From assembly GCF_035594765.1 (NCBI RefSeq), contig NC_085843.1:9873955-9937954 (forward strand): a stretch of 64,000 nucleotides of DNA, written 5' to 3'. A model generated the notes under the pieces. The model was given only the letters and a program-made list of their open reading frames with translations. It was not told the origin of the DNA and searched no databases. Positions 14,843 through 41,000 of the stretch are shown here, one piece after another (position 1 is the stretch's first letter; each line of letters begins with the position of its first letter). This stretch comes from Anolis carolinensis. Taxonomy: Eukaryota. The translations under genes and the position numbers were made by a program.

Positions 14843-14939
14843 TTTAAAAAGTCATTTGCCCTCCCTAGTCAGACTACTACGAAATCATATTATAAGACAA
14901 GCAGGGAATAATTGTAAAAAGATGAGCAAATACTTAGAA

Positions 14940-15300
14940 AATGTCTTTTTACAGAACATTTTATTAACTGTGAGCGTATCAGCATCAAATACAGTTTGAT
15001 ATAAATAATAACATACAAGCACTGGATTGTCGCAGGCAAGCAACAATCAAAGTGTGGACTGTGCTAAAATATACAAAAGGAGTCCTTGGAAATAATTATG
15101 AGAGGCATAAATCACAATTTGAAATTGATCAGAATGGATTTTCTTGCTAATCAGTGTCATGAGCCGATGAAAAGTATTCAAGTATTCTTTCCTATGATCA
15201 CAACAGAACACCAGCCACACGAAAACAAGTCCCTTGGAGCAAAGTCGAGCTGAATGTCAATATCAGCCATGCAGCCTCCTGGTGATCGCGGTGAGATGAC
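14940..15300 (-). other. Candidate non-coding 3' exon of THRSP copy 1
   Basis: Acceptor tctttttcaattaattctgtag ends at 15301; AATAAA at 14960-14965 (minus); mirrors the two-exon THRSP architecture. The 3' end is approximate. Confidence 0.55.
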
Positions 15301-17048
15301 CTACAGAATTAATTGAAAAAGATATCGATAATTTTAATATATATTTATATATTTCCTACCAGAACATTTTTATTCAAGTACAGAATTATATACACTTAAA
15401 ATAAATAAATAAACAACACTCCTAGCAGCTTCAGGTTGTCTAGTACACCTTACAAGATATCAAGGGCAATTAAAGTTCCATTATTCACATAGCAAGTATA
15501 ATGTCTTCTCCAACTATTTCTTGATATCTGCTAACCACATATCAATTAAAAAGTCTTACACAACTCCACAAAAGACAAATTATATGGGGGATCCACTCAG
15601 ATAACCACTTTGATAAGTCTTTTAACTAATGAAATAGTTCAGGACTATGCAGTAAGGACAAGAGTAATCTTAACTGCATTATAATTAATAATAAATACAT
15701 AGAAACAACACAGATTCATCACCTTGCATTGAAAATTGGGACTTAAAAAGACTCACAATGTAAAATAATTCAATTACAACATACAAAAAATATATTAGAA
15801 ATACAGTAGAGTCTCACGTATCCAAGCAAACGGGCCGGCAGAAGCCTGGATAAGCAGATATCTTGGATAATAAGGAGGGATTAAGGAAAAGCCTATTAAA
15901 CATCAATTAGGTTATGATTTTACAAATTAAGCACCAAAACATCATGTTATACAACAAATTTGACAGAAAAAGTAGTTCAATACGCAGTAATGCTATGTAG
16001 TAATTACTGTATTTATTAATTTAGCACCAAAATATCACGATGCATTGAAAACATTGACTACAAAAATGCGTTGGATAATCTAGAACGTTGGATAAGTGAG
16101 TGTTGGATAAGTGAGACTCTACTGTAATTACAATCAGGCTTGATTTTAATTGCATGGTCATCAAGTATCCAAAATGATAAATTACCAAGAAATGCACCTA
16201 GATGTTCACAGTCATGCATTATTTTATGGATTATTCTGCTCATTCACAATAAATCCTTTCATTTTGTCATTTAAAACACACCTGTCAATACAAAATCAAG
16301 GCAATGCCTGAAGTTCAGCATAATATGGCAGGAATACAATAAAGTGAGAAAATAAGTTGGTAGCATGTTTAATAGGCTTTTTTCTTAACCCCTCCTTATT
16401 ATCCAACATTTTCCCTTATCCAATGTTTTGCCAGCCTGTTTATGTTGGGTAAGTGAGACTCTACTGTACTTCAGACCAGTTTGGAATAGTCTTAAGTGAG
16501 ATCCTATAGATATCTGAGGCTAGAGGTGAATGGGATTACAATCAGCAAAAAATCAAAGTACAGTAGAGTCTCATTTATCCAACACTCGCTTATCCAACAT
16601 TCTGGATTATCCAATGCATTATTGTATTCAATGTTTTCAATACATCATGATATTTTGGTGCTAAATTCGTAAATACAGTAATTACTACATAGCATTATTT
16701 CATATTGAACTACTTTTTCTGTCAAATTTGTTGTATAACATGATGTTTGGATGCCTAATTTGTAAAATCATAACCTAATTTGATGTTTAATAGGCTTTTC
16801 CTTAATCCTTCCTTATTATCCAACATATTTGCTTATCCAACATTCTGCCGGCCCTTTTATCTTGGATAAGTGAGACTCTACTGTATCAGACAACTCATAC
16901 TTGTTGTGTCCGATCTGGAAGAGCCTCAGGTTTTTGATCCTACAGAGATCTGATTGAGGAGAAGTTATCTGACTTACTTTCCCATTCATCCTGCCCACCT
17001 TGGAGTTGCAAGGACATCTTACCTTTGTCTCCTTCAGCTGTGCTTTTC

Positions 17049-17429
17049 TCAGAAGCTGAGTCTCTTTTCGTTCCCGTTTATCTGCCCCATAATTTCATTG
17101 TATTTGGAGGTCACTGCATTGGCTCTCTGGGTCAGCTGCGTGAGGACGCGGTACAAACTGGAGACGTGGTAGTGGAAGAAGCCTTCCAAGTCCTCGTCTT
17201 CATGAACCTCTTCTTCACTAACGAGAGATGTTTGGTGGCTGCGGGGCAGCAGGCCTCCTTCCACCACCAACTTGATGGATTTCAACAACATGTAATACTC
17301 GTACAGGTCTTTTTCCTCAGAGCCAGAATCAGACGTGTCCTCCTTCCCTTCCAAAGAGACTCCTTGTAGAAGACTGGGAAACATGACTGTCTGTTCCATT
17401 TTGTGCACAGCTGAAAAGTACTCTTCCAT
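17049..17429 (-). CDS. THRSP: Spot14/THRSP-family protein, copy 1 (126 aa)
   Basis: MEEYFSAVHKMEQTVMFPSLL...DLYEYYMLLKSIK...DLEGFFHYHVSSLYRVLTQLTQRANAVTSKYNE has the three Spot14/MIG12 conserved blocks. accATGG Kozak context; donor AAG|gtaaga at 17023/17022 just after the stop. Confidence 0.92.
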   Translation of the reverse strand: MEEYFSAVHKMEQTVMFPSLLQGVSLEGKEDTSDSGSEEKDLYEYYMLLKSIKLVVEGGLLPRSHQTSLVSEEEVHEDEDLEGFFHYHVSSLYRVLTQLTQRANAVTSKYNEIMGQINGNEKRLSF

Positions 17430-18107
17430 GGTTTTCCTTCGTCTCAGGTCCTGGTGTATGAATGGAGCTCTCCGCCGAGTCTCACGAAGCCTGGTTTGCA
17501 GTGACTGGTCTTTTACCCGCTCAGTTCGTGGCAATTTATGAGCCCATGCTGAATGATAATCATCCGGAGAGCATGTAGCCGGGATGCCTTCCACTCAAGG
17601 GGTGAATGACACTCCTCTTTCCCCAGCAAATAGGATCCTTTCTTTTTGAACACCCCAGCGAATGGTCCGTTCGTTCGCAATGTGACTTTGTTTACAGGTT
17701 GGAATGCTCTCAAACAAAACGAAGGGCTAAATCAGGATGTTTGACCCCTCAAATGAGGGCAGAATAGGCTGATCAGCTTATAGCCCAGTTATTGCATCAG
17801 ACACCGAGTGGGAAATTCCTAGCATGTTTTGAGCAAGCCATTCCACTCCACTCCACGCCATATTGATCTGGGGAGTGGGGGGGGGGGGGGTCCTCAAACT
17901 TTTTAAGTGGAGGGCCGATTCACAGTCCCTCAGACTGTTAGGGGGCCGGACTATGATGAAATAGTCCAAAATTAAGATTGTTGTTGTTGTGTGCCTTCAA
18001 GTAATTTCAGACTTAGATCAACCCGAAGTCTAAAGTTTAGGACAGAGGCCAGGTCAATGACCTTGGAGGGCTGCATCTGGCCCATGGGCCTTATTTGGGG
18101 ACCCCTG

Positions 18108-18437
18108 ATCTAGTCAATCTCATAAGACCATAGGTAAGCAAAGAGACCTCCAAAGACCATCTAGACCAGGGGTCCCCAAACTTTTTAAGCCGAGGGCCGG
18201 TCCACAATCCTTCAGACTGTTGAGGGGCCAGATTATCATTTGAAAAAAACAAACAAACAAATTCCGATGCACACTGCACATGTCTTATTTGTAGTGCAAA
18301 AACAACAACAACAAGAAAAGTGAAAGAACAATACAATATTTAAAAATAAAAACAATTTTAACCAACATACATTGATCAGGATTTCAATGGGAAGTGTGGT
18401 CCTGCTTCTGGCCAATGAAATAGTCAAGTTAATTAGG

Positions 18438-18481
<44 letters not shown>

Positions 18482-19288
18482 GTGCCTTCAAGTCATTTCA
18501 GACTTTGGGCGAGCCTAAGTCTAAAATTTATTTATTTATTATTTATTTATTTACTGCATTTATTTACTACATTTGTATCACACCCTTCTGACCCCAAAGG
18601 GGACTCAGAGTGGCTTACAAATTATATGTACATACAATATATTATATTATTAGCATAGCACAATATTAGCATTATATATTACTATATTGAACTATGCCAC
18701 TATACTGTAATATTATTAGTAATATTATATGTAATATAGAACATATAATTAATATTATTATATGGTATTATTATTAGTGTTACATTGTATTACATTATAA
18801 TATTATTATCAATATTATATGTATATACAATATATTATATTATAAAACTGAGGGCGGGGGCCAGGTAAATGACCTCGGAGGGCCATATCCGGCCCCCGGG
18901 CCTTAGTTTGGGGACCCCTGATCTAGACGGTCTCATAAGACCATAGGTAAGGAAAGTGACCCTCAAAGGCCATCTAGATGACCTCATCAGGCCATCAGAA
19001 GACCACAGATAAGGAAAGGGACCCTCAAAGACCACCGAGATGGTTTCATAAGACCATAGAGAAGGAAAGGGCCCCCCAAAGGCCATCTAGACTCATAAAA
19101 CCATAGGTAAGGAAAGGGGCCCTCAAAGGCCATCTAGACGGTCTCATAGGACCATAGGTAAGGAAAGTGACCTCCAAAAGCCATCTAGATTGTCTCATAA
19201 GGCCGTAGCTAAGCACAGAGACCTTCAAAAACCATCTAGACGATCTCATAAGACCATAGGTAAGCAAAAAGACCTCCAAAGACCAGGT
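18108..19288. repeat. ~51-bp minisatellite (about 8 units) split by an OC1-like hAT
   Basis: Unit atctagacggtctcataagaccataggtaaggaaagtgaccctcaaaggcc at 18108-18158 and 18921-19288. Confidence 0.85.
18167..18920. mobile_element. Non-autonomous hAT (OposCharlie1/OC1-like)
   Basis: TIRs CAGGGGTCCCCAAACT; perfect 8-bp TSD atctagac; internal aacaaattccgatgcacactgcacatgtcttatt as recalled for OC1. Related pieces at ~17886-18107 and 19289-19388. Confidence 0.8.
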
Positions 19289-21241
19289 AGACTTAGGTCA
19301 ACTCTAAGTCTAAAGTTTAGGACAGGGGCCAGGTCAATGACCTTGGAGGGCCACATCCGGCCACCGGGCCTTAGTTTGGGGACCCCTGATCTGGGGATTT
19401 AACAGGAGCTAAGATCTGTATTTGTACAACCTTATTGGCCGAAGGAAGAGCATAACCCATACTCAAGGGACTGTATTGTATGATAACTGTTGCCAGACAC
19501 CAGATCAGCAGATTTTTGTGTTGTCTTTCACCAGTCTGCTATCTCTCCCATTGAGGCCCATCATTAGCCACAGTCCCACCTTGTGCAGTGAGTCCTGATC
19601 TCCTTGCAATTGTGCAAAACCATGATGGGAAACACTTTATGATGAGAAGTAGTTGCTATTCCACATTACAGAAATGGGGTGAGATAGTGACAAGGGTGCA
19701 GTAATGTCAAAAAATGCAACAAAGGGTGCATCTTCACTGGCACATTTACCGTAAAGGAATGGCAAATCCTCGCCACGGTAGTTGTACTGTAAGACAATTA
19801 CCTTCACAGGGTCCTGGCTCAGGAGGGAAATCAGGCAGAGAAATTGAGTCTCGTGAGAGATGCAAAAAGCAAAGTTTATTTTCACATAGCTATGCCTGGT
19901 AGCACAGTGCGTTAAAGCTCTGAGCTGCTGAACTTGTGGACAAAAAGATTCCAGGTTCAAATCCCTGGAGCGGAATGAGCACCCACTGTTGCCCCAGCTC
20001 TTGCCAACCTAGCAGTTCGAAAACATGCAAATGTGAGTAGATCCATAGGTACCGCTCTGGCGGGAAAGTAACGGCGCTCCATGCAGTCATGCCTGCCACA
20101 TGACCTTGGAGATGTCTATGGACAACTCCGGCTCTTCGGCTTAGAAATGGAGATGAGCATCAACCCCCAGAGTCGGATACGACTGGACTTTTTGCTTTTT
20201 GCCAGTCTGCTATCTCTCCCATTGACTGGTCAGGCGAAACCTTTACCTACCTATGAGAAGGCGGACAGCTGTACATACTCCAGAGGGCTGCACAATGCAA
20301 ATGGCTGCCACAAAGGATTTTATATCTCAGCCTTATCTAGAATTGACCAGTGGCTGAGGGTCTTCCTCACCTTCCACACCTACTTTGGCATAAATGATAC
20401 CAATGACCTAACCTGTTTACTCCGAGCTCTCCTCTCTCCTTAGAACTTTCTGGAGAAAAAGGGAGGGGCATATGCAGGGACAAAACTACATAGGCAATAG
20501 TTTACTACTTTCTGGCTTATAGTCCCTTCAGTACAACCCATGAACAAATGCACGTAAACACAGCTCACTGCAGAGTGTGGTGGGAGTTTCCTTTTCTGGA
20601 GGGTTTTAAGTTGGATGGCCATCTGTCAGGAGTACTTTGATTGTGTTTTTCCTGGTTGGTTTTGGTGGCCATTGTGGTCTCTGATAACTCTATGATCCTG
20701 TGATTCGCTTAATGTGACTTTGAGCCGCATTAACAGAAGCCACGGGGTGCTCCAGAGCTTCTCCAAAACTCCAGAGGAAACTGCAACTTTGGGTACATGT
20801 CATCAGCTGTGCTATTGACTTCCTATTTGGTTGAAGACATTTTCCTTGCACTTGGGTAGTCTTGAGTGAGAGGATGGCACTTAACTTTCCATGTCAGTCT
20901 GGCATTTGCAGTGCTCACTGGGTACAAAAATGACACTGAACACTGCTTGGCATCTGGAATTAGGTTAGCTCAGGCATGGCCAAACTTTGGCCTTCCTTCC
21001 AGGTGTTTTGGACTTCAACTCCCACAGTTCCTAACAGCTGGTGGGCTGTTAGGAATTGTGGGAGTTGAAGTCCAAAACAGCTGGAGGGAAGGCCGAAGTT
21101 TGCCCGTGCCTGGGTTAGCCAAAGTGATTAATCAGTATAATCATTTCTGGCCTGTCAACATGAATCCTAAAACAAATCAGATGGTTTACTGATTTCTAGA
21201 GAAAGAAATATCTATCCATCTCCATTTTTCAAAGGAAATGG

Positions 21242-23961: not shown

Positions 23962-24536
23962 TTTGTCTGCCTGAGGCAGGTGTGAATGTTGCAATTGGCC
24001 AGCTTGATTAGCATTGAATCATTGACAGTTGCCTCAAACAGACAAGAGATCTTTCTCTCACCCTGGACCTCCCACAGATATATAAACCTCACTTGCCTAG
24101 TTTCTTGTCTGGATTTCCCTTGTCTTCTGAGTGTTGTTCTTTATTTACTATCCTGATTTTAGAGTTTTTAAATACTGGCAGCCAGATTTTGTTAATTTTC
24201 ATGGTTTCTTCCTTTCTGTTGAAATTCCAGACAAACAATCAGGGCCAGTTAACACCTCCCAAAAGCATTCCCCCAGGCAGGAAACGCCCAGGCTTTGAAG
24301 CTGCAATGCTATTCAGTGCTAATCAAGCAGGCCAGTTGCAACATTAACACCTGCCTCAGGCAGACAAGAGTTCTTTCTCCCGCCCTGGACATTATTCCAC
24401 AGATATATAAACCCCACTTGCCTAATTTCCCACAGACCTCACCACCTCTGAGGATGCCTGCCATAGATGTGGGCGAAAAGTCAGGAGAGAATGCTTCTGG
24501 AACATGGCCAGACAGCCCGGAAAACTCGCAGCAACG
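23962..24536. mobile_element. Rearranged Penelope pLTR fragments
   Basis: Alternating plus and minus pieces of the same pLTR sequence. Confidence 0.75.
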
Positions 24537-24715
24537 CACAAATTTGCAAAGGTTTGTAAAGTTCTATTTAAAACTAAAAAAAAAACAAAAACCCATTCCT
24601 GCTGGTGTTTGGTTCTTCACACTATAAAGAATAATCTATTCATAAAGGAATTAGTATTGTTACCATGAAGGAAAGCAGTCATGTTTGGGAAGCATTGATT
24701 TGGATGTCATCATGC

Positions 24716-25670
24716 ACAATCAAAGCCCTGACAGACCGTGCACAAAGAATCTGCGAACCTCACCTCCTCCAAGGTGAACTAAACCACCTAAACTGGGCTC
24801 TACAGGCCAATGGATACTCCACCACAGACATCAGAAGAGCTGCAAGGCCAAGAACAAGCCATGAGAGTCAAGACAAAGATCCACCCAGAGGAAAAGTCTT
24901 CTTACCAGACATCAAGGGAACCACTGACCGCATAAGCAAACTGATGAAGAAGCGCAACCTACAAACCATCTACAGACCCACAAAGAAAATCCAACAAATG
25001 CTATGGTCAGCGAAGGACAAGAGGGATCCTCTCTCCTCTGCAGGAGTCTACTGGATACCCTGCAGCTGTGGACAAGTCTACAAAGGGACCACCAAACACA
25101 ACAGCATTGCCCAGGCACGAATCAAGGAATATGAAAGGCACTGCAGACTAACTCAACTAGAGGAGTTAGCCATAGCAGAGCACTTGATGAACCAGCCTGG
25201 ACACAGGATATTATCTGAGAACACAAAAATGCTGGACCACTCCATCAACTATCATGTCAGACAACACAGAGAAGCCATTGAAATCCACAAGCATGTGGAC
25301 AACTTCAACAGAAAGGAAGAAAACATGAAAATGAACAAAATCTGGCTACCAGTATTAAAAAAAAACTCTAAAATCAAAACAGTGGATGGGAACCAACACT
25401 CTGAGCGCAGAGCACAGCTAATGACTAACAAAGGATGCCCCCAGGCAAGAGACAAAAACCTTTCCAATGCTAATTAGGGTGATTAACTGAACAGTGACAA
25501 AAGACTCTTGCCACACCCTGGACTCTACACAGATATATATTCTTTCCTTTCCTTACTTAGTTTATCCATACCTCACAAACTCTGAGGATGCCTGCCATAG
25601 ATGTGGGCGAAACGTCAGGAGAGAATACTTCTGGAACATGGCCACACAGCCCGAAAGACATATAACAACC
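24716..25670 (+). mobile_element. Penelope-like retroelement, 5'-truncated (RT C-terminus, GIY-YIG endonuclease, pLTR)
   Basis: ORF 24665-25477 contains GVYWIPCSCGQVYKGTT...RIKE...AIAEH...REAIEI...NFNR, a PLE GIY-YIG domain. Confidence 0.9.
25580..25619 (+). ncRNA. Hammerhead ribozyme motif at the 3' pLTR of a Penelope coding fragment
   Basis: CUGAGGA-U-GCCUGC-cauagau-GUGGGC-GAAACGUC-AGG directly downstream of the GIY-YIG ORF. Confidence 0.72.
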
Positions 25671-26409: not shown

Positions 26410-26673
26410 TCGTGTGGTAGGAAATACTTTATTTCTCGAAAGCAGTCGCAATTTACAAGCGTCAGAAAGCAATAGCGCCCAAGGCATACAATTAGATATT
26501 GAGTTCATAGATAAGAAATCTTTGGTCAACAAAGATCAGTGCGAAAGTCATTCAAGTATGGTTCGTGCAACGATGGTCCATGGGGTGGAGATGGCAATGA
26601 AGACCTTTCTGTGTCCTTCCCAGAAACAGGACTGGGGTTGTACATATGTCCAAGTTGCAAAATGCAGTTTGTC
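26410..26673 (-). other. Candidate non-coding 3' exon of THRSP copy 2
   Basis: Acceptor ctctttttttcattatcaattttacag ends at 26674; AATAAA at 26428-26433 (minus). The 3' end is approximate. Confidence 0.55.
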
Positions 26674-27977
26674 CTGTAAAATTGATAATGAAAAAAAGAG
26701 TTAACAAAGGGCACTGAAATCCAATATCATTAAAGTAAAGCTATTTATGGGAGGCTGCTGGAAGGAGTAGATGCACCCTTAGATTAACAAAGACTGAATA
26801 CTCTAAAATGTATGTGTTGTAATATAGGAAGTAATAAAAGGAACAAGACCCCAACCTTGACTCTCTATTGATCCTTATATAGCAGGCCTGGGCAAACTTG
26901 GGCCCTCCAGGTGTTTTGGACTTCAACTCCCACAATTCCTAACAGCCGGTAGGCTGTTAGGAATTGTGGGAGTTGAAGTCCAAAACACCTGGAGGGCCCA
27001 AGTTTGCCCAGGCCTGCCATATAAGGATTAAAAGGATGTTGTTCCCAAGACAGAAATAGCATTTCTGTACAGGCCTAGTAGTTGCTTTCTTTAATTATTT
27101 TTACTATTATTCAAGTAAGTAGTAAACTATCAGTAAGCACAGCAACATCAACACTTGACCTAAGATATTTTGCTGCTTGATTTTGCTGCAGATAACCCTG
27201 GATAATGCTGTATAAAGTCAGAGTTTTTACATTATTAGCTCCAAATAAAGTACAGCCAGTGAATCAATGACATTTGTTGACATCTTCAGAAGCAGATTCA
27301 ATGGATCAACCTTAGATGGAACTTCCAAAAAGATTCAATCCTTAGTGTCAATAGTTTCTTTTTGGCACACAGGGCAGAAAAGTCTATATCTTTCCTGGCA
27401 ATGAAAATAAGTCATAACAAAAGAAATAGCAGAAAATATATATATATCAACACCCAAAAACTAGTTGAGATGATGGTCAGTGTTGGTTAGTAGCTATGGT
27501 GCCATCTACACTGCCATATAATGCAGTTTCAAACCACATTAAAGGGTACTGTAGATGGGGCCCAAAATGCCACACAGTCCTATAACCTGGAATATTAAGC
27601 AGAAAATCTCGCAATACATGCTTTGAATTGGGTTATATAAGTCCATACTGCCATATATTCCAGTTCAAAGCAGAAAATGTGGGATTGTATTCAGCTGTGT
27701 GGAAGGGGCCTGGAGCAGCAATTCCACTCCAGATTTAAGGCTGAACTTAAAGGAGCAAAAGAGGGTTCGAAGTGCAGAATTGCTTTAAAGTTCAGACTAA
27801 AACCCAAAGTGGATCTACTGCTGTATTGACACCAAAGCTATCAGTTGGTTCCACATAACAGCCTAATGGTACAAGTGGTTTGTATGATGTAAAATAATAT
27901 TTATTCCTCCAGTTTCTACTGGCAAATGATGCCAAGAGAAGAAATGTTAGAACAGTGGTTCCCAACCTTTGGGCCTC

Positions 27978-28472
27978 CAGGTCAGTTGAAGGGAGATGTT
28001 GGCAAGCTGGAAAGCGTCCAGAGGAGGGCAACTAAAAGGATCAAGGGTCTGGAGAACAAGCCCTGTGAGGAGCGGCTTAAAGAGCTGGGCATGCTTAGCA
28101 TGCAGAAGAGAAGGCTGAGAGGAGACATGATAGCCATGTACAAATACGTGAAGGGAAGTCATAGGGAGGAGGGAGCAAGCTTGTTTTCTGCTGCCCTGCT
28201 GACTAGGACGCGGAACAATGGCTTCAAACTACAGGAAAGGAGATTCCACCTGAACATCAGGAAGAACTTCCTCACTGTGAGAGCTGTTCAGCAGTGGAAC
28301 TCTCTGCCCTGGACTGTGGTGGAGGCTCCTTCTTTGGAGGCTTTTAAGCAGAGGCTGGATGGCCATCTGTCAGGGGTGCTTTGAATGAGATTTTCCTGCT
28401 ACTTGCAGGGGGTTGGACTGGATGGCCCATGAGGTCTCTTCCAACTCTACGATTCTATGATTCTATGATTCT
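27978..28472 (+). mobile_element. CR1 LINE 3' fragment inserted in a hAT MITE
   Basis: [16 protein letters not shown]...YEERL-type motif and RRLRGDMI...WNSLP; (ATTCTATG)n tail. Confidence 0.9.
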
Positions 28473-28697: not shown

Positions 28698-29045
28698 TCA
28701 CCACCGGAGAGAAAATTCGTTCTGGCCGATCTGCCCCATGATTTCGTTGTATTTGGATGTTACGGTGTTGGCCATGCCGGTCAGCCGCGTCAGGATGTGG
28801 TGCAGACAGGACACGTGGAAATGAAAGAGTCCTTCAAGGTCTGCCTCCTCCTTGCCGTCCTCTTCGGGGAGGCCGAGGCTCTTCTCTTTCAGGCCTCCTT
28901 CTGCCGCCAACTTGATGGATTTGAGGAGGCTGTAATATTCATGCAAGTCTTTGTCGTCCTGGTTCTCCAAGGAGACCCCCAAGAGAAGACTGGGGAACAT
29001 CACCGTTTGTTCCATCTTGCGGACGGCAGCAAAGTAGTCTTCCAT
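28698..29045 (-). CDS. THRSP: Spot14/THRSP-family protein, copy 2 (115 aa)
   Basis: MEDYFAAVRKMEQTVMFPSLL...DLHEYYSLLKSIK...DLEGLFHFHVSCLHHILTRLT...KYNEIMGQIGQNEFSLRW. gccATGG Kozak; TATAAA at 29141-29136; donor CAG|gtgagc at 28685/28684. Confidence 0.92.
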   Translation of the reverse strand: MEDYFAAVRKMEQTVMFPSLLLGVSLENQDDKDLHEYYSLLKSIKLAAEGGLKEKSLGLPEEDGKEEADLEGLFHFHVSCLHHILTRLTGMANTVTSKYNEIMGQIGQNEFSLRW

Positions 29046-29135
29046 GGCGAAAAGTAAAGAGATTCTCCGAGTCTGAAGTCCCAAGAAAGACTAGCCAAGT
29101 TGAAGCTGTCATAGCTCCAAACCTTGCGGCATCCC

Positions 29136-29199
29136 TTTATAAAGCAAGATGCAATCCTCCTGGCACATGTCGGACCTCATGATTGGGATGGTCCCAATC
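29136..29199 (-). promoter_or_regulatory. THRSP copy 2 core promoter: TATA box plus paired CCAAT boxes
   Basis: TATAAAG about 95 nt upstream of the ATG; GATTGGGA-tgg-TCCCAATC at 29181-29199 gives a CCAAT on each strand. Confidence 0.6.
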
Positions 29200-30141
29200 T
29201 GGACACTCTTCTTCCAGCTGAGTTAGCAGTTTCTTGCTCACAGCTGGCAACGTGATTTTATTTACAATCTGGACTCATTCCCAAGCTCTTTTGCCCAGAT
29301 CGGAGCTCATGTTGCCTCTCTGTTGGCCAATAACAAGAAGGAAAGAAAGGGAGAGCTCAACGTGAATGGAAATCTCCTATTTCTTTTTTGGCAAGACACA
29401 TTCCTGGTGGCTGGAGAGCCGAGCCAAGGCTGTGAAAGGCACCGAGAGCTATGTTTCGTCACTTGTACTCAGTTTGCGAAATGGGTTCTCCCCATAGTTT
29501 TGCTGAGTATCTGGAGGAACTATTTTCAGGACTCTTCTCCAACCACAAGACATTGGGCAACGGCCCAAGTCTGGTAACCTTGGTCTCCTCTAAATATATC
29601 CATAAAAGTGTCAAAGGGGATAACTGGGGAAAGACATAGCAAGTGGCCATATATTTAGCCAGACCGTATGTCCTTTCGCCTGGTATTGTGAACTTCCAAC
29701 TTGGCTTCCAACTTCAAGGGTGTCATGACTATGGCTACATCTCCACTGTAGAATGAATGCAGTTTGATTTCATCTTAATTGCAATGGTTAAATGCTATGG
29801 AATTATAAGAATTGTATAGCAGAGTGCCAATTTGCTAAAGGCTAAAGACCTTGTAAAACTATAGCTCCCAGGACTCCATGGCCTTGATTCATGACACTTA
29901 AAGTGCATTAATTCTACAGTGGAGATGCGCCTGAAGCTTTGGATTGCATTCCAAACTTCAAAAGAGCTGTTCAAGGTTCACCTTATTTCGCAGCAAATAA
30001 TGTTCCGTATCTTGGGTCATTCTTTTGCAATCTGAAATAAAAAACAGAGTGGGTTTGCTACACTGCTAAACAGAAGCAACAGGCAATCACAGTGGTAACA
30101 GCTTTCCAGGGGACTATTGCGGAGCGGAAAATGTCCTTTCT

Positions 30142-31695
30142 GTTGTTGTGAGTTTTCTGGGCTGTATGGTCATGTTCCAGAAGCATTCTCTCCTGACATT
30201 TTGCCCACATATATGGCAGGCATCCCCAGGGGTTCTGAGGTCTGTTGGAAACTAGTCAAGTGAGATTTATATATCTGTGGAAGGTCCAGGGTGGCAGAAA
30301 GAACTCTTGTCTGCTGGTAGAAAGTGTGACTGTCGCAATTAATCACCTTGATTAGCATAGAAAAGTTTTGCATCTTCAAGGCCTGGCTGCTTCCTGCCTG
30401 ATGCAATCCTTTGTTGGGAAGTGTTTGATGGCCCTGATTGTTTCATGTCTGGAATTCCCTTGTTTTCAGAGTGTTGTTCTTTATTTACTGTCCTGATTTT
30501 AGAGGATTTTAAAAATACTGGTAGCCAGATTTTGTTCATTTTCATGGTTTCATCCTTTGTTGAAATTGTCCACATGCTTGTGGATTTCAATGGCTTCTCT
30601 GTGTCATCTGACATGGTGGTTGTGCGAATGGTCCAGCATTTCTGTGTTCTCAAATAATATACTGTGTCCAGGTTGGTTCATCATGTGCTCTGCTATGGCT
30701 GACTTCTCTGGTTGAGTTAGTCTGCAGTGTCCTTCATGTTCCTTGATTTGTGCCTGGGCAATGCTGTTGCGTTTGGTGGTCCCTCTGTAGACTTGTCTAC
30801 AGCTGCAGGGTATACGGTAGACTCCTACAGATGTGAGAGGATCCCTCTTGTTCTTTGCTGAATGTAGCATTTGTTGGATTTTCTTGGTGGGTCTGTAGAT
30901 AGTTTGTAGGTTGTGTTTCTTCCTCACCTTCCCCATGCAGTCAGTGGTTCCCTTGATGTATGGTAAGAACCCTTTTCCTCTGGGTGGATCTTTGTCTTGA
31001 CTCTCATGGCTTGTTCTTGGCCTTGCAGCTCTTCTGATGTCTGTGGTGGAGTCTCCATTGGCCTGTAGAGCCCAGTTTAGGTGGTTTAGTTCACCTTGGA
31101 GGAGGTGAGGTTCGCAGATTCTTTGTGCACGGTCTGCCAAGGCTTTGATTGTGCTTCTTTTTTGACTTGGGTGATGGTTGGAGTTTTTACGTACTGTAGG
31201 TATCTCTCCGTGTGTGTGGATTTTCTATAAACTGCTTGGCCCAATTGTTGATTGGGTTTGCGGATGAGTAGGACATCTAGAATTTACAGTTTCCTTCATT
31301 TTCTTTTTCCATGGTGAATTGGATGTTTGGGTGGATGCTGTTGAGGTGGTCCAGGAACTTGTTGAGGTCTTTTTCTGCATGGCTTCAAATGGTGAAGGTG
31401 TCATCCAGAAATCTGAACCATATAGTGGGCATTTTTCATGCTGATTCCAGGGCTTGTTTTTCAAAGTGTTCCATGTAAAATGTTCTTGGCAGGAGGTTGG
31501 ACTGGATGGCCCATGAGGTCTCTTCCAACTCTACTATTCTATGATTCTATGTAGAAATTTGCTATGACAGGGCTGAGAAGGCTCCCCATGGCTACTCCAT
31601 CTTCATTGTCCTCCTGAAAATAGCTTGTGGTGAGGGAATGGTGAAACAGGGCTGTGATGTCTCCTGGGAAATGTCTTTTCACCTGCTGCTTTCAA
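30142..31695 (-). mobile_element. Penelope-like retroelement, degenerate, with a short CR1 tail at ~31485-31550
   Basis: Minus-strand DGVAMGSLLSPVIANFYM and WFRFLDDTF (RT motifs), GVYRIPCSC GIY-YIG, then a pLTR; frameshifted. Confidence 0.88.
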
Positions 31696-32595
31696 AATGG
31701 AGATGGTAAGAATCTAATTTGGGACCTTTCCCATTTACCTGTCTCTAATTCAGTGGTTCTCAACCTGTGGGTCCCCAGGTGTTTTGGCCTGCAACTCCAG
31801 ACATCCCAGCCAGTTTACCAGCTGTTAGGATTTATGGAAGTTGAAGGCCAAAACATCTGGGGACCCACAGGTTGAGAACCACTGCTATAATAGATATGGT
31901 TCTATGCTATAGAATTCAGGGATTTGTAGTTTAGGGAGAAACAATCAGAGTTCTCAGCCTCCACCAAACTATAGATCCTGGAATCCATCAAATGCAGCCA
32001 TGACAGTTAAGGTGGCACCACGATGCTGTAATTGTGTCATATCGAAAAGCTCTTGAGATGTCAGGAATTGAACCAGGTACTTTTACTATCATCTGCTATT
32101 TGGTTTTCCTGGATGTGGAATATAGAAATTGAACCCAGAACTTTCCCTATCTATTGCTTTTCAGTTCTAGCTGAAGATGTCACAACTTGAATACAGGACT
32201 TGTTATTTGATTCAGCCAGTGGTCTAAGTTTATCTAAAATAAAGTATAAGGAACAGATCTTTTGGATGATGCTGTCCCAAGAACTTTCCTTTTCCTTTTC
32301 ACTAGATAAAGAATATTTATAATTAATACTATATCTGCTACTCATACCTCCTGTCTCCCCGTTTATCCAAGTCTGTGGTGGATGAATATCAATAGGGGTG
32401 CAAATTACCTTGAGAAGCTGATTATTCCCAAATGTGGATTAATTTTTTTACCAAAATTAAATTTAATGTTTTCTTCTGCTGTTCTGGATAGCTGCTTCCA
32501 GGGAATGCTTTACAAAAGTTAAATTTGCCCTTGTGAAGATGGATTAGTATTATTTATTTATAATTTATTATTTATTTATAATTTATTTATTTATA

Positions 32596-32626
<31 letters not shown>

Positions 32627-33040
32627 TATTATTATTAGTAGAGACCCCATCTCACAAGTTCTTTTTTTTGGGTGATATTGCTAACGGATATCACACGTCT
32701 CTTATATATATATAGTGAAGGTAAAGGTTTTCCCTTGAGATTAAGTCTAGTCGTGTCTGACTCTGGGGGTTGGTGCTCATCTCCATTTCTAAGCCAAAGA
32801 GCGGGCGTTATCTGTAGGCCATGTGGCCAGCATGACTGCATGGAACGCCGTTATCTTCCCACTGGAGCAGTACCTATTGATCTACTCACATTTGCTTCTT
32901 TTCAAACGGCTAGGTTGGCAGAAGCTGGGGCTAACAAAAGCTTTCCCTGGGTTGGCAGAAGCTTTCCCTGCTCCCCAGATTCAAACCGCTGACCTTTTGG
33001 TCAACAAGTTCAGCAGCTCAACGCTGTGCCACCGGGGGCT

Positions 33041-33091
<51 letters not shown>

Positions 33092-33092
33092 C

Positions 33093-33256
33093 AAAATCAA
33101 CTTTGCAATAATTTAAGTTCTCTTTTCCTTAGCTTTGGCTAATAACTACAAATCAGAATATCTTCCATATATATATATATATGGAAGATATTCTGATTTG
33201 TTGTTATTAGCCAAAGCTAAGAAAAAGAGAACTGAAATTATTTCAAAGTTGATTTT
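33093..33256. repeat. Imperfect palindrome centred on (AT)n
   Basis: Arms of ~75 bp with few mismatches around 33167-33182; a (TA)n tract lies at 33043-33090. Confidence 0.85.
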
Positions 33257-35998
33257 TTTCTCTACTCTTATAGTTTGTAAAAATATTATTTAAAAATTCA
33301 GGGAGTTGTCATTTTACAAACTTTCTGTGCCAAAGAGTGCTTTATACCTCAGCAAACTACAACTCCCAGGCTTCCATAGCATTGAGCCATGGCAGTTTAG
33401 GTAATGTCAAACTGCATTAATTCTACAGTGTAAATGCACCTCTAGAGAGAAGGGAGTGAAGAGTAGGGCAGAGGTTATGGGTGGTGGGAGGTTAAGCACA
33501 CCTTCTCCGCATGCCTTTTCTCTTTTCCAGACAGCAGACTTTCCCTTCTTAAATGTTTTTTTAAAATGTCTGGCAGAGACACGGGGGACCAAAGTTCTGT
33601 GGACACAATTGCATTTGACCCTAAAACAGACCACAGAATATTACAAAGACAATATAGTCTACCTCTATATCAGCCATGGGCAAACCTGGCTCCTCCCGAT
33701 GTTTTGGACTACAACTCCCACAATTCCTAACAGCCGGTAGGCTGTTAGGAATTGTGGGAGTTGTAGTCCAAAACACCTGGAGGGCCAAAGTTTGCCCATT
33801 TGTGGTCTATAGAATCATAGAATTATAGACTCTTAAGGGTTTGGCGGAACCGTAAGGGCCATCTAGTCCAACCCCTTGCCATGCAGGAATGTCGTTGGAC
33901 ACTTTAACTGCCATCGTTCATTGCAATGAAACCATGGGAGTAGTAGCTTTACAAGTTCTTTATTTAAGGTTCTCTGCCAAAGAGTGCTGGTATCTCACCC
34001 ATCTGCAACTCCCAGAATGCTATGGCACTGACCCATGGCAGTTAAAGGGGTGTCAAATGGCCCGTGTAGACGCACTGCAAGATTTAAAGATAAAAGTAAA
34101 GGTTTCCCTTGATGTTAAGTCCAGTTGTGTCCGACTCTGGGGGTTGGTGCTCATCTCCATTTCTAAGCCGAAGAGCCGGCGTTGTCCGTAGACACCTCCA
34201 AGGTCATGTGGCCACTGGCATGACTGCATGGAGCGCCATTACCTTCCCGCCAGAGCAGTACCTATTGATCTACTAACATTGGCATGTTTTCGAACTGCTA
34301 GGTTGGCAGAAGCTGGAGCTAACAGCAGCCACTCGCGCCACTCCCGGAGTTTGAACCTGGCACCTTTCGGTCTGCAAGTTCAGCAGCTCAGTGCTTTAAC
34401 ACACTTCGCCACCTGATTTTTCTTCTATTGATTAAACAGAAGGCGTCTTTTGCTTCAAACAGCAACATTCTTGGTATTGCTCTCTGCAACTCTCCTCCAC
34501 TATTTTTAAGGCATAGAAACCTATGGCACCTGGGTCAGTGTGAGATTGGCAGAGAAAGAAGCAAATTCACTGTGTGGATGGTTAGATGTAATGTCCTGGA
34601 AACGGTTCGAGGTTTGGATGGTGCTTCTACACATCACTAATACTGGCCTCAAACCAGTTCCAGGATCTGCATGATTCACAGCTTCACGGCCATCAAGGAA
34701 TCGTATTTTCTTTTTCGCCTCTGCATGTGCAGATCACCAGGGCATCTGTCCCTTCATCTATTTTACCATGCAATGTCGCTTATATTTTAGATATGCATGT
34801 GCGAATTATGGGCTGTATTTTGGCGTGTTCCCCAACTTTGCTTATCCTGGTTTAAAACCCTTAAATGGCGTGTCTGCTGTGTGCATCATTTAAAGTTCGA
34901 ATCCCACCCGGGGAGAATACAGATGAGCTCCCTCTGTCAGCTCCAGCTCCATGCAGGGACATGAGAGAAGCCTCCCACAAGGATGGTAAAACATCAAAAC
35001 ATCCGGGCGTCCCCTGGGCAACGTCCTTTTAGACGGCCAATTCTCTCACTCCAGAAGTAACTCCGGTTGCTCCTGACACACACAAAAAAATAATCATTTA
35101 AATACTGCACCCTCAAGCTGCCTTCGAAGTGCATTTAGTGATCAGTATAGATGTGCCCCAGCAGCTAAAAAAACCCATGCGATTATATATTATAGACATA
35201 ATCTCACTCTATTCTGTTTTGGTCAGACCTCACCTGGAAGGTTTTATCCAATTCTGGGCATCACAATTCAAGAAAGGTATTGATAAATTGGAAAGTGTCC
35301 AGGACATTAAGCCCAATGAGGAACTGGTTAGGGAGCTGGGGACATTTAGCTTGGAGAAAAGAAGGAGACATGAGAGCCATGTTTAAAGATCTGAAAGGAT
35401 GTCACATTGAGGAGGAAGAAGCCTGTTTTCTGCGGCTCTGGAGACTAGTACACCACGAAGCGATGGATTCAAGCTGCAGGAAAAAAGAGATTTCACCTTA
35501 GCATTAGGAAGAACATCTGGATAGTTAGCCTTGTTTGACTGTAGAACATGCCACCTGGAAATCTGGTGGAGTGTCTTTCTCTGGAGGTTTTTAAGCAGAG
35601 GCTGGATGACCATCTGTCAGGAGGGCTTGCATTGTGTCTTCCTTCATGGCAGGACTTCTTAAACTTTTCCCACTTGCAGTCCCTTTCTGGCCGAGACATT
35701 TTTGTGTGAGCTCAGGTATACAGGTATATAAAATAGATATAAAACACCAAACATGTACTGGTAATACATCAGCAATAGCAAGACTTGCTAAACAGGTTGA
35801 TTCTTCTTTTTATGTAGTGTGGTTGAAGCATTTTCTGCAGAATCCACTGTAAACACTGCACGTGGTTGCTAACAGATTTGGATAAATTGGTGGCTTTCAC
35901 AAGCCTTTTACTATTGGTAATTTGTTTGTAGCTCCAACCTCTCAACCTTCCTAATGCCACAACTCCTTAATGCAGTTCTTCATGTTGTGGTGACCCTC

Positions 35999-36073
<75 letters not shown>

Positions 36074-36074
<1 letters not shown>

Positions 36075-36473
36075 TTCTGGAACACAACACACCAGACATC
36101 ACAGTCGTGGAAAAGAAAAAGGTTTGGATCATTGATGTCGCCATCCCAGGTGACAGTCACATTGATGAAAAACAACAGGAAAAACTCAGCCGCTATCAGG
36201 ACCTCAAGATTGAACTTCAAAGACTCTGGCAGAAACCAGTGCAGGTGGTCCCGGTGGTGATGGGCACACTGGGTGCCGTGCCAAAAGATCTCAGTCGGCA
36301 TTTGGAAACAATAGACATTGACAAAATTACGATCTGCCAACTGCAAAAGGCCACCCGACTGGGATCTGCACGCATCATCCGAAAATACATCACACAGTCC
36401 TAGACACTTGTGAAGTGTTCGACTTGTGATTTTGTGATACGAAATCCAGCATATCTATCTTGTTTGCTGTCAT
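36074..36473 (+). mobile_element. R4/Dong 3' fragment
   Basis: LEHNTPDITVVEKKKVWIIDVAIPGD...IIRKYITQS*, flanked by (AAT)n/(GAT)n and (AAT)n. Confidence 0.88.
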
Positions 36474-36475
36474 AA

Positions 36476-36515
<40 letters not shown>

Positions 36516-36538
36516 TCTATCTACTTTGCTGTCAGACT

Positions 36539-36679
36539 NNNNNNNNNNNNNNNNNNNNNNNNNNNNNNNNNNNNNNNNNNNNNNNNNNNNNNNNNNNNNN
36601 NNNNNNNNNNNNNNNNNNNNNNNNNNNNNNNNNNNNNNNNNNNNNNNNNNNNNNNNNNNNNNNNNNNNNNNNNNNNNNN
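36539..36679. other. Assembly gap
   Basis: Run of N. Confidence 1.
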
Positions 36680-37380
36680 CTGCCTCTATCTCCCCAAAGG
36701 GACTCGGCAGCTAACATGGGGCCAAGGGCAGATAGTTACAATATAACCATAAAACTACTTTTGTTGCTTTATTAGTTACTTCATAACTGTCATTTTGCTA
36801 CTGTTATGAATCGTAATGTCAATATCTTATATGCAGGATGTATTTTCATTCACTGGACCAAATTTAGCACGAATGCCTGATACACCCACATTTGAATACT
36901 GGTGGGGTTGGGGGGCCGAGGGAGAATGAGTTTGTCATTTAGGGGTTGTAGTTGCTGGGATTTATAGTTCACCTACAATCAACGAGCATTCTGAACTCCA
37001 TCAATGATGGAGTTGAACCAAACTTGTCACACAAGCAACAAAACACCAGAAGGTTTTGGTAGGCAATGACCTTGAGTTTTTGCACTTTGAGTTGAGTTAT
37101 TGCACTTTAGTTTTAATTGCCTTCCCATGTCACCCCTTTCTCCAATTTGGTGGTCCTTTTTATCTCAAAATTTTATGTTCCAAATTGGTTTTTACAGTTA
37201 TTGTATTGCACTTGTATTCATGTCTGATTTTATTGTATTTTACTTATTTGAATATGCTGTTTTATCTGTTTCACTCTGTTTTATTGTTTTCAGGCTTCTC
37301 TCTGTATTAGCTGCCCTGAGTCCTTGCAGGGAGATGGAAGTGGGATAGAAAAATTAAGTTGTTATTATTATTATTTTATT

Positions 37381-38118
37381 ATGACACAGCAAACAAGATA
37401 GATATGCTGGATTTCGTATCACAAAATCACAAGTTGAACACTTCCCAAGTGTCTAGGACTGTGTGATGTATTTTCGGATGATGTGCGCAGATCCCAGCAG
37501 GGTGGCCTTTTGCAGTTGGCAGATCGTAATTTTGTCAATGTTTATTGTTTCCAAATGCCAGCTGAGATCTTTTGGCACGGCACCCAATGTGCCCATCACC
37601 ACCGGGACCACCTGCACTGGTTTCTGCCAGAGTCTTTGAAGTTCAATCTTGAGGTCCTGATAGCGGCTGAGTTTTTCCTGTTGTTTCTCGTCAATGCGAC
37701 TGTCACCTGAGATGGCAACATTAATGATCCAAACCTTTTTCTTTTCCACAACTGTGATGTCTGGCGTGTTGTGTTCCAGAACTTTGTCAGTCTGGATTCG
37801 GAAGTCCCACAGTATCTTTGTGTGCTCATTTTCCAATACTTTTGCAGGTTTGTGATCCCACCAGTTCTTTGCTGCTGGGAGGTGGTACTTGAGGCATAAG
37901 TTCCAATGAATCATTTGGACCACATAGTTGTGCCTCTGTAGTCTGTCTGTGCGATTTTCTTACAGCAGCTGAGGAGATGATCAATGGTTTCGTCAGTTTC
38001 CTTGCACAGTCTGCATTTTGGGTCATCAGCTGATTTTTCGATCTTGGCCTTAATTGCATTTGTTCTGATGGCTTGCTCCTGGGCTGCAATGATCAGATCT
38101 TCTGTCTCCTTCTTCTCC
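37381..38118 (-). mobile_element. R4/Dong 3' fragment
   Basis: CCHC finger plus REL endonuclease; flanked by (ATT)n on both sides. Confidence 0.88.
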
Positions 38119-38122
38119 TGTC

Positions 38123-38164
<42 letters not shown>

Positions 38165-38166
<2 letters not shown>

Positions 38167-38463
38167 GACACTGAGAACTGGAAAGCCCTGGCCCTTGAGC
38201 GCTCTAATTGGAGGTCAGCTGTGACCAACAGTGCTGCAGAATTCGAAGAAGCATGAATGGGGCTTAAGGGAGAAACGTGCCAAGAGGAACGTGCATCAAG
38301 TCAACCCTGATCGGGACCACCTTCCATCTGGAAACCAATGTCCTCACTGTGGAAGAACATGCAGGTCAAGAATAGGTCTCCCCAACCACCTACACGTCCA
38401 CCACCAAAACACTACACTTGGAGGACCATCATCTTCGAGCTATGAGGCATTGCCTAAGTAAGT
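38165..38463 (+). mobile_element. RTE-clade LINE 3' fragment
   Basis: WKALALERSNWRSAV...CPHCGRTCRSRIGL..HLHVH zinc-finger end and a taagtaag tail. Confidence 0.75.
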
Positions 38464-39029
38464 CTATCTGGGTAAAGGTTTTTGAAGTCATCACGCCACC
38501 GTATTAGCATGTCTACACAGCCAAAACAAGTGGACACCAAGTAAATCAACGTTGCACCATGCCACCCTTCTGTGCTTGAGACGTGTTTTAGGATCTGGCA
38601 TTTCAGCCACCTTTGGGAACATTTCTTGTTCCATTTTCAGACAGCCTGCCTAGTGCATGGCCCCGTCTATTATTAACTGGTGTGGCAAGACAGTCTGATT
38701 TTGTAAAGAAGGGGTCAAGGTTCTGTGTACAGTGCAGTTCTATTTTGGGGAGAGATTTCAGTCCGCAAACAAGACCCACACGGCTGCCCACAATGCATGG
38801 ATGGGCAAGGATAAAGGTTGTGCGGTTACATAAGAGGAGGCCAGCCAGGGTGTCTTTGCTTGGCACGGATTCGGATCACGTTCTCTGTGCCTGGGCTTTG
38901 CAGCTGCTTTGCTACATAAGCTGCCACCAAACTAGACCATCAAGTAGAGCTCACTTCTCGTCTTGGAGAAATCCACTCGAAGAGAGCTCTCTTCTTCTCT
39001 TGGGACCACAAATCCTTTTCCTCGCAGCC

Positions 39030-39407
39030 ATGGAAAGTTACTTCTCGGCCGTCCAGAAGATGGAGCAGACGGTGATGTTCCCCAGCCTCCTTCAAGGAGT
39101 CTCCTTCGAAGAGAAGGAGGACGCCTGCGATCCGGACGGCGCCAAAGACTTGTACGAATATTTCACCCAGCTGAAATCCATCAAGCCGATGGTGGAAGGG
39201 GGCTTAGTGCCTTCTGACAACCGCCGGCTGCTTGGTGTTGCTAACCGAGCAAAGGAACCAGAAGACAACGAAGAGCAAGATCTTGAAAGAGTCTTCTATT
39301 ACCACGTCTCAGCCTTGCACCGCATCCTCCAGCAGCTGACCCGGAGAGCCGATGCCGTGACGTCCAAATACAACGAAATTATGAGCGAAATCTCTCTTCG
39401 CTGGTGA
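39030..39407 (+). CDS. THRSP: Spot14/THRSP-family protein, copy 3 (125 aa; same orientation relative to neighbours as human THRSP)
   Basis: MESYFSAVQKMEQTVMFPSLL...DLYEYFTQLKSIK...DLERVFYYHVSALHRILQQLTRRADAVTSKYNE. gccATGG Kozak; donor TTG|gtgagt at 39432/39433. Confidence 0.93.
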   Translation: MESYFSAVQKMEQTVMFPSLLQGVSFEEKEDACDPDGAKDLYEYFTQLKSIKPMVEGGLVPSDNRRLLGVANRAKEPEDNEEQDLERVFYYHVSALHRILQQLTRRADAVTSKYNEIMSEISLRW

Positions 39408-39645
39408 ACCTCAAACCATGGACTGTACCTTGGTGAGTAATATTTAACTGTCAAGGATCAATGCTTCAACTGCTAAGGCTCAATGTTATGGGATCCTGTG
39501 ATTTATAGTTTTGCAAGGTCTTTAGCCTTCTCTGCCTCACCAAACTACAAATCCTAGGATTCCATATCATTGAGTGGTGGTGGTTAAAGTGGTGCTAAAC
39601 TGCTATAATTCTGCAGTGTGGGTGGGATGTTAGATACAAAAGAGA

Positions 39646-39936
39646 TGTGTTGTTGAAGGCTTTCATGGCTGGGATCACAAGGTGGTTGTGTGTTTTCCGG
39701 TCTGTATGGCCATGTTCCAGAAGTATTCTCTCCTGACGTTTCACCCACACCTATGGCAGGAATCCTCAGAGGTTACCACATATATGAAATGACTTACTGG
39801 AAATTAATTTCCTCCCATTATTTTCCGTTTGCATACCTCACAACCACTGAGCATGCCTGCCATAGATGTGGGTGAAACGTCTGGAGAGAATACTTCTGGA
39901 ACATGGCTATACAGCCCAGAAAACACACAACAATCC
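39646..39936. mobile_element. Penelope pLTR hairpin in the THRSP copy 3 intron
   Basis: Inverted arms 39646-39774 and 39835-39936 with a host-derived spacer. Confidence 0.78.
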
Positions 39937-40345
39937 CACAAAAGAGACATAAACCAAATAGTTTTAGAACAAGGCTGGTCCAGGAAATAAGTCTGTAGCC
40001 TTGATCAAACCATCCATTTGGACTACAACTCCCCAAAACTCCTAGCAGCCAGGCATAATAAGGCAAAAAGAACAGTTTTAGGGGAAGCAGATACTGTATA
40101 ACGTGCTAGACTTTGATTTGTTGCTGCTATTGTTTTTAATGGTTTGTGTATTAACTGAGTCTACAATGCCATATAGCTCAATTCAATGCAGTTGGTCTGC
40201 ATTGTGAAACTGCATTATATGGCAGTGTAGATCCAAGCAAATTTTATTAGATAGTTTACTTGATTTTTACCTCCTGTTTACTGTGAATTTTTAACTACAA
40301 TATTTTAATGGCTGTAAGTAGCCTTGAGTCCCCAACCCAAGGGAA

Positions 40346-40399
<54 letters not shown>

Positions 40400-40637
40400 C
40401 TCATTTCCAAATCAAGCTTGAGCCAGGAAACATGCAAAAGGGTTGCTTTCTTTCCAGAATCTCCTCTCAGCATAACTGGGGAAAATTATGTTTGGGAATT
40501 CTGGTTACTTCAATCCTTTTTCTGAACTTTACCTGCTCAAAATGTAATTATTGTATATAAACATTATTGCTTTGTTACCATATCATAGGAAACGATTTAC
40601 TGGAAATTAATTTCCCTCCGTTATTTTCTGTTTGCAG

Positions 40638-41000
40638 ACGAGCCTGATATCCTTCCTTGGGGATCTATTTGAACAGATCTGCAAAGAAATCGCTTGACCG
40701 GACGACATTGAGACATTATGAACTGCTGTCGTTTAACAGCAACATCTCTGAACATTTCAAGCACATGTATTGTGTTATTGTATTCTATTTTATGTGTTAT
40801 TTTATTTTATTTATACCTGTATCTGGGCATATTTGTGCCTCAGTTGGTATTACAACATTGAAATTCCTAATTATTTAAGAGATATTACATTAATATTACT
40901 AAAGAAACATGACAATTTTTTGTATTTCTCAATACGTTTTTCACTCGCTCGATAATTTCAGATAAATACCAATAAATTGCTTATATTTTTTAAACAGTTG
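40638..41000 (+). other. Candidate non-coding 3' exon of THRSP copy 3
   Basis: Acceptor ttattttctgtttgcag ends at 40637; AU-rich body; AATAAA at 40971-40976. Confidence 0.65.

Follow-up and report, generated by a model that had tools for sequence, protein, structure and literature searches.

Three tandem THRSP (Spot 14) genes between KCTD14 and NDUFC2 in the anole Anolis carolinensis

Introduction

THRSP, the gene of Spot 14 (S14), is a classic regulator of fatty-acid synthesis that responds to thyroid hormone and carbohydrate by induction; how it works at the molecular level is still disputed. Human has a single THRSP between KCTD14 and NDUFC2 at 11q14.1, a gene of two exons with the intron after the stop codon; the chicken has two THRSP copies, and these duplicates have been associated with fatness. 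Here we describe the locus of Anolis carolinensis in a window of 64 kb (the whole stretch of DNA analysed; assembly rAnoCar3.1, GCA_035594765.1, chromosome record CM069369.1, approximately 9.86-9.93 Mb), which holds three intact THRSP-type genes, labelled c1, c2 and c3 in their order along the window. We consider it highly probable that they form a three-gene tandem cluster which arose when one ancestral THRSP, flanked by KCTD14 and NDUFC2, was duplicated twice, most probably on the squamate stem, and that all three copies have been kept functional.

The S14-MIG12 heterodimer and the polymerisation of acetyl-CoA carboxylase (ACC) were reportedly treated by Kim et al. and by Colbert et al. in 2010. 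Overlapping roles in lipogenesis have been described for S14 and MIG12 (S14-R), with S14 forming both homo- and heterodimers (PMC12183620, PMC6151027), the second of these studies having used chicken THRSPA; MIG12, a known dimer partner of S14, binds and activates ACC (PMC12183620). A search of the full-text literature on THRSP/Spot 14 in reptiles, lizards and snakes found no paper describing a THRSP cluster or triplication in squamates, and the evolutionary picture of the squamate cluster is apparently unpublished. The genes themselves are already on record: all three anole proteins are NCBI/UniProt gene models (RefSeq XP_008116845.1 and UniProt H9GTS3 in the c1 protein cluster, A0A803T971 in that of c2 and an A. 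sagrei RefSeq model in that of c3) and homologous sets of two to three genes are annotated in many squamates, so that the novelty implied by an initial annotation of this DNA was overstated. They are added members of a well-known family that came about by the commonest mechanism, tandem duplication, and not a new kind of system.

Three THRSP-type genes at one locus

The window contains exactly three intact coding sequences (CDSs) of the Spot_14 family, as found from the listing and translation of its open reading frames (ORFs). The CDS of c1, the paralogue adjoining KCTD14, lies on the minus strand at 17049-17429 and encodes 126 amino acids plus stop (equal to protein P0017); that of c2, the shortest paralogue, in which both linkers have undergone deletions, is on the minus strand at 28698-29045 (115 amino acids plus stop, P0046); and that of c3, which adjoins NDUFC2, lies on the plus strand at 39030-39407 (125 amino acids plus stop, P0001). 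Scores against the Pfam profile Spot_14 (PF07084) are 118.2 (c1), 92.4 (c2) and 106.2 (c3) bits, with a gathering cut-off of 21 and with profile positions 17 to about 150 of 151 covered in all three copies, and each CDS opens in a Kozak-like context (ACCATGG in c1, GCCATGG in c2 and c3). The initial annotation had named three intact ORFs of these lengths, which ORF list, translation and Pfam bear out, and the motifs and C-termini that it quoted (NEKRLSF in c1, NEFSLRW in c2, EISLRW in c3) reappeared on re-translation. No fourth copy or pseudogene fragment was detected by tblastn of the three copies and outgroup proteins against the 64-kb window. The anole copies share 54-62% protein identity among themselves and approximately 28-30% with MID1IP1.

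The gene order is KCTD14(-), c1(-), c2(-), c3(+), NDUFC2(-). At the flanks, a KCTD-type gene with BTB_2 and KCTD_C domains is found on the minus strand from approximately 8441 downward, and NDUFC2 (NDUF_C2, PF06374) on the minus strand from approximately 47100 upward. This confirms that the KCTD14-NDUFC2 locus contains three intact genes of THRSP type; the anole locus is the KCTD14-THRSP-NDUFC2 arrangement of human with two added copies, c3(+) being convergent with NDUFC2(-) and standing, as proposed, in the orientation of human THRSP. The divergent transcription of c2 and c3 that had also been reported is present and is repeated in Anolis sagrei, where c3 and c2 are divergent and 7.1 kb apart in a locus that contains no N (L003); in Sceloporus, c2 is followed 6.5 kb on by c1 on the same strand.

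Phylogeny and age of the copies

A maximum-likelihood (ML) tree was computed with IQ-TREE from 93 proteins over 140 columns, with named outgroups added and no tuatara sequence. It separates, at 100/99, a THRSP side of 88 rows, which includes the amphibian, mammalian, coelacanth, turtle and bird THRSPs, from five rows of MID1IP1/MID1IP1L. All three copies of the anole belong to the former, and none pairs with MID1IP1 or another amniote-wide member of the family, in line with what had been supposed; membership of MID1IP1 was rejected on this split. The sauropsid THRSPs form a clade (99/94), and all 61 squamate sequences stand together (100/93) opposite turtles, alligator and birds, while the bird copies are monophyletic (100/100) with two inner paralogue groups. 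On this tree the squamate triplication is independent of the avian alpha/beta duplication.

The c2 group (24 rows, 92/93) comprises iguanians, a cordylid, skinks, lacertids, a teiid, an amphisbaenian, anguimorphs, snakes and the gecko Eublepharis, and the c3 group (11 rows, 91/82, with a core at 100/98) comprises iguanians, agamids, Elgaria, Varanus, pythons and Hemicordylus; the iguanian c1 sequences form a clade at 100/96. Among the hits listed, most squamates with good assemblies have two to three annotated homologues on one chromosome (three in Sceloporus, Elgaria, Pogona and Eublepharis; two in Tiliqua, Zootoca, Varanus, Vipera and others), turtles and alligator have one each, and birds have two or three. 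Because the three orthogroups span iguanians, anguimorphs, skinks, lacertids and snakes, the triplication is old: as judged from the tree, it happened before Scincoidea, Lacertoidea and Toxicofera diverged, and c2 at least is older than the separation from geckos. The description of the copies as old duplicates agrees with these orthogroups common to squamate families and with the synonymous divergence between paralogues (dS 1.3-1.6).

Several points weigh against so simple a history. The tree rests on 140 columns only; support for uniting the iguanian c1 clade with c1-like sequences from Elgaria, skinks and lacertids is weak (57/17); two clades of geckos only and a fast-evolving snake clade on a long branch are unassigned among the three orthogroups; and concerted evolution in the stem lineage could mimic squamate monophyly. 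The duplications might be older than squamates, sauropsid- or amniote-wide, with squamate monophyly produced by gene conversion between tandem copies or by losses in turtles and crocodilians, and with c3 as the true orthologue of the turtle, bird and human gene. A tree in which c3 was constrained to group with the non-squamate sauropsids is 13.3 log-likelihood (lnL) units worse than the free tree, yet its p value of 0.061 in the AU test falls short of formal rejection of an older duplication; birds too carry tandem THRSP duplicates, c3 adjoins NDUFC2 in the human orientation, and at position 47 (c3 numbering), which is diagnostic of the orthogroups, the c3 residue is the one common to turtles and alligator. 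At diagnostic position 95, however, the outgroup state is kept by c2 and not by c3, and the better likelihood of the free tree, the squamate clade, the monophyly of the bird copies and the single copy retrieved from turtles and alligator all speak against this alternative, which we regard as clearly unlikely. An older, sauropsid-wide origin is thus disfavoured, and the squamate stem is the most likely date of the triplication.

Selection, exon structure and transcription

Ratios of non-synonymous to synonymous divergence (dN/dS) were estimated by the Nei-Gojobori method on codon alignments, with 1000 bootstrap replicates per comparison. Between A. carolinensis and A. sagrei the ratio is 0.14 for c2 and 0.10 for c3, and between A. 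carolinensis and Sceloporus it is 0.10 for c1 (dS 1.04) and 0.27 for c2 (dS 0.42); for the A. sagrei c1 protein (P0024) the look-up found no contig on record, and the c1 ratio was therefore computed against Sceloporus. Paralogue pairs within the window give 0.15-0.19 at a saturated dS of 1.3-1.6, and therefore reflect no recent duplication, recent gene conversion or assembly artefact. In every comparison 0 of 1000 replicates reached a dN/dS of 1 (P(w>=1) = 0). The purifying selection initially proposed is supported for all three copies by these estimates, the orthologue ratios of 0.10-0.27 lying for every copy well away from 1. The Anolis-Sceloporus dS of c1 and c2 differ 2.5-fold (1.04 vs 0.42, at approximately 70-78 synonymous sites; locus L004), a gap that may be due to noise from sampling, to rates that vary locally or to constraint acting on the synonymous sites of c2.

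In c1, c2 and c3 the entire CDS lies within one exon, followed by a GT donor 23, 10 and 25 nt, respectively, past the final base of the stop codon (26, 13 and 28 nt past the last sense codon). The donors read AAAG/GTAAGA in c1, CCAG/GTGAGC in c2 and CTTG/GTGAGT in c3, with 17023, 28685 and 39432 as last exon bases, and are matched by polypyrimidine-AG acceptors at 15300, 26673 and 40638, with the AATAAA signals a further 335, 240 and 333 nt downstream. For c3 this gene model is seen in RNA: the junction 39432>40638 is contained in one 672-nt contig (run X5, record 23), of which letters 191-672 lie on window positions 38950-39431 and letters 3-190 on 40637-40824, the pieces abutting and one G being ambiguous between the exons. 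Transcription and splicing of c3 are thereby shown, and the initial gene model with an intron in the 3' untranslated region (3'UTR) was right. Exon 1 of c3 occupies 38950-39432 on the plus strand, 38950 being the 5' end of the contig and hence a lower bound of its extent, and the 3'UTR exon is placed at 40638-40976 (plus strand; acceptor TGTTTGCAG/A; AATAAA at 40971-40976), its 3' end being predicted. In a UniProt model of c3 (P0295, 204 amino acids) translation begins further upstream, at an in-frame ATG near 38793 that lies outside the RNA contig.

For c1 and c2 the same two-exon layout, with the CDS in exon 1, is predicted from consensus signals and from the conservation of exon 2. The putative 3'UTR exon of c1 lies on the minus strand at 14960-15300 (acceptor ending in TTCTGTAG/G at 15300; AATAAA at 14965-14960), within which 15284-15176 (81%) and 15179-15014 (72%) are conserved with Sceloporus whereas the c1 intron is not. 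That of c2 lies on the minus strand at 26428-26673 (acceptor TTTTACAG/G at 26673; AATAAA at 26433-26428), in a region conserved with Sceloporus over 26807-26374 (70%) and with A. sagrei over 26946-26342 (78%).

Run X5 is an RNA run because its c3 contig is spliced, and of the words sampled from the c2 exon stretch it also contains 73%. Approximately 12 further small runs (25-124 million contig letters), whose contig totals are too small for genome assemblies, hold 67-82% of these words, and genome-like runs hold 90%; as the query included flanking intron and promoter letters, the lower share would fit mRNA that is without them. Together these observations argue strongly for transcription of c2, while that of c1 is suggested by constraint. 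Two other sources were rejected as evidence of transcription: runs X1 and X3, listed as 'RNA?', have contigs that continue through intron and intergenic DNA and total approximately 1.4 Gb, and were treated as DNA, and a skink Logan contig of the c1 orthogroup (L005, SRR12196015) reads through the GT donor into intron-like sequence and is genomic or unspliced.

It might be argued that only one or two of the copies are functional and that the remainder, most plausibly c1, is a silent or decaying duplicate. The RNA evidence is confined to c3 and c2, the kinds of the runs (RNA or DNA) were guessed by the tool, with X5 alone shown to be RNA by its spliced contig, and some lineages have no retrieved member of an orthogroup (c3 in the listed skinks, lacertids and colubroids; c1 in Varanus). 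Against this, the c1 ORF is intact, its dN/dS of 0.10 was obtained at a dS of about 1.0, its protein is 87% identical between A. carolinensis and A. sagrei, its donor, 3'UTR exon and upstream region are conserved, and RefSeq and UniProt models exist for it; loss of function in any copy seems to us very improbable. As far as these analyses reach, none of the outcomes that the initial annotation had named as contradicting it was seen.

Conservation extends beyond the exons. Upstream of c2, 0.64 kb (29046-29689) aligns with the Sceloporus orthologue at 70-75% in the same block as the CDS, as does 0.42 kb (17430-17849) upstream of c1, and both regions are candidate conserved promoters. In the skink contig (L005:986-1040) the post-stop donor and the opening bases of the intron (GTAAGA...CTTGCAACTCCAA) hardly differ from their counterparts in anole c1 (17022 downward), even though the sequences are deeply diverged, and this points to a conserved element where the c1 3'UTR intron begins.

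Protein architecture

A profile of the three copies matches the crystal structure of mouse Spot 14 (3ONT_A, residues 19-151) with E=2.4e-28. In the AlphaFold2 (AF2) model of c3, helices span 2-15, 41-56 and 78-124 and are joined by two acidic linkers of low confidence; the per-residue confidence score (pLDDT) is 81-97 in helix 3 and <50 in the linkers, and the overall confidence score (pTM) of 0.32 is low, as expected since this is a monomer model of an obligate dimer. The alignment of the paralogues is unchanged at 57 of the 84 columns that make up the three helical blocks (22 of 38 in the heptad-rich helix 3) vs 6 of 47 in linkers and tail, and the contrast between conserved helices and diverged linkers that had been noted from the ORFs is thus recovered in numbers. 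Only three positions are fixed differently between the orthogroups (26, 47 and 95 in c3 numbering, over 45 squamate sequences), and because the diagnostic positions of the core are so few, its sequence gives little evidence of diverged dimer interfaces or specificity. The THRSPs of squamates, turtles, alligator and birds all have their first residue where mammalian S14 has Met17 in the alignment; these sauropsid proteins are without the N-terminal extension of approximately 16 residues that mammals, amphibians, lungfish, coelacanth and shark possess.

Assembly and repeats

The sole run of N within the cluster, at 36539-36679, is intergenic between c2 and c3 and touches no CDS or predicted exon. 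It falls in the spacer of an inverted repeat whose 414-nt arms are 94% complementary (36067-36480 / 37376-37789), 59 nt past one of them. Near-identical retroelement ORF products are encoded on opposite strands at 35954-36403 and 37453-37923, and the inverted retroelement pair is the likely cause of the gap. A misjoin at the gap could in principle flip c3 relative to c2, but the gap-free A. sagrei locus shows the same divergent arrangement of the two genes. That the three copies are an assembly artefact, a haplotype falsely duplicated around a gap which, with its flanking inverted repeat, does sit between c2 and c3, is scarcely conceivable and was rejected, given that the copies are only 54-62% identical in protein at a dS >1.3, that gap-free sequence of A. 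sagrei and Sceloporus shows a separate orthologue for each of them, identically arranged, and that c2 and c3 are each present in independent public runs.

Other repeats surround the genes. Very high-copy repeats occur in the c3 intron (39628-39909) and just downstream of c3 (41132-41300), where summed contig depth climbs to 10^5-10^6 in each of the four runs and numerous contigs join or skip within the repeats. The interval 39700-39900 contains two inverted copies of a motif of approximately 50 nt (...CCTGCCATAGATGTGGGTGAAACGTC...), which recurs, with similar ORF translations, near 14566-14847 and 24295-24627. A pair of transposon ORFs with closely similar products (...RAQRICEPHLLQGELNHLNWALQANG...) flanks c2 at 24665-25477 (plus) and 30604-31140 (minus), and the tail of a LINE-like reverse-transcriptase ORF (27926-28384) lies inside the predicted c2 intron. 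A scan of 14000-48000 against Rfam at gathering thresholds gave no hit.

Discussion

The locus is best read as a tandem THRSP cluster in which a single ancestral gene between KCTD14 and NDUFC2 would have undergone two duplications and in which all three products would have been retained as functional genes, each keeping the two-exon layout of the family. Each protein is predicted to be small and to retain three conserved helices, leaving the acidic disordered linkers free to evolve. By homology with mammalian S14, the proteins would be expected to pair as helical dimers and in that form to modulate de novo fatty-acid synthesis, whether by way of MIG12 and ACC or as nuclear cofactors; dimerisation, a role in lipogenesis and a regulatory nature of the divergence are all inferred. 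As the orthogroups differ so little in their helical cores, partitioned expression, through regulatory subfunctionalisation or dosage, is the more likely reason for their long retention, rather than new biochemical activities. Among the points against the overall reading, a motif scan of the window found no consensus carbohydrate-response element (ChoRE) and no thyroid-response element of the DR4 type near the genes, the sole DR4-like site being far off at 61743; degenerate or distal elements may exist in both cases.

A bolder proposal, in line with the combinatorial S14 dimer system for squamate lipogenesis that the initial annotation had put forward as a possibility, is that the three squamate THRSPs and MID1IP1 form combinatorial homo- and heterodimers, with their differing linkers and tissue-specific expression separately tuning ACC polymerisation and lipogenic transcription in liver, fat body, skin and vitellogenic ovary. 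We hold this to be unlikely; if true, squamates would have an elaboration of lipogenic control of their own, kept for >150 million years. Three constrained paralogues kept since before the major squamate families split offer comparative physiologists a natural experiment in animals whose physiology includes ectothermy, episodic feeding, lipid storage in fat body and tail, and yolk production, and the cluster may reveal which functions of S14 can be partitioned. The NCBI automatic names label several squamate copies 'mid1-interacting protein 1-B-like'; the tree corrects these misleading names and supplies a c1/c2/c3 orthology framework for reptile transcriptomics.

Among the described members of the family, MID1IP1 (MIG12/S14-R; mid1ip1a/b/l in fish) shares the Pfam family Spot_14 with the anole genes but differs from them in its separation from the THRSP type at 100/99, in its low identity of approximately 28-30% and in its other locus. 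Mammalian THRSP/Spot 14 belongs to the same PF07084 family and THRSP subfamily, with the same neighbours KCTD14 and NDUFC2, the orientation seen in c3, the three-helix architecture and the two-exon layout with the intron after the stop codon. It differs in being one gene rather than three, in encoding a protein of approximately 150 amino acids as against 115-126 in the anole, where the linkers are shorter, and in the N-terminal extension of approximately 16 residues, the anole proteins starting at the equivalent of Met17 (3ONT); the anole genes differ further in having no consensus ChoRE or DR4 nearby. Avian THRSPA and THRSPB are, like the anole genes, tandem THRSP duplicates of a sauropsid at the same kind of locus, N-terminally short and of approximately 130 amino acids. 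They stem from an independent event, the bird clade (100/100) lying outside the squamate clade (100/93), and the three squamate orthogroups are much more diverged among themselves than are the avian copies.

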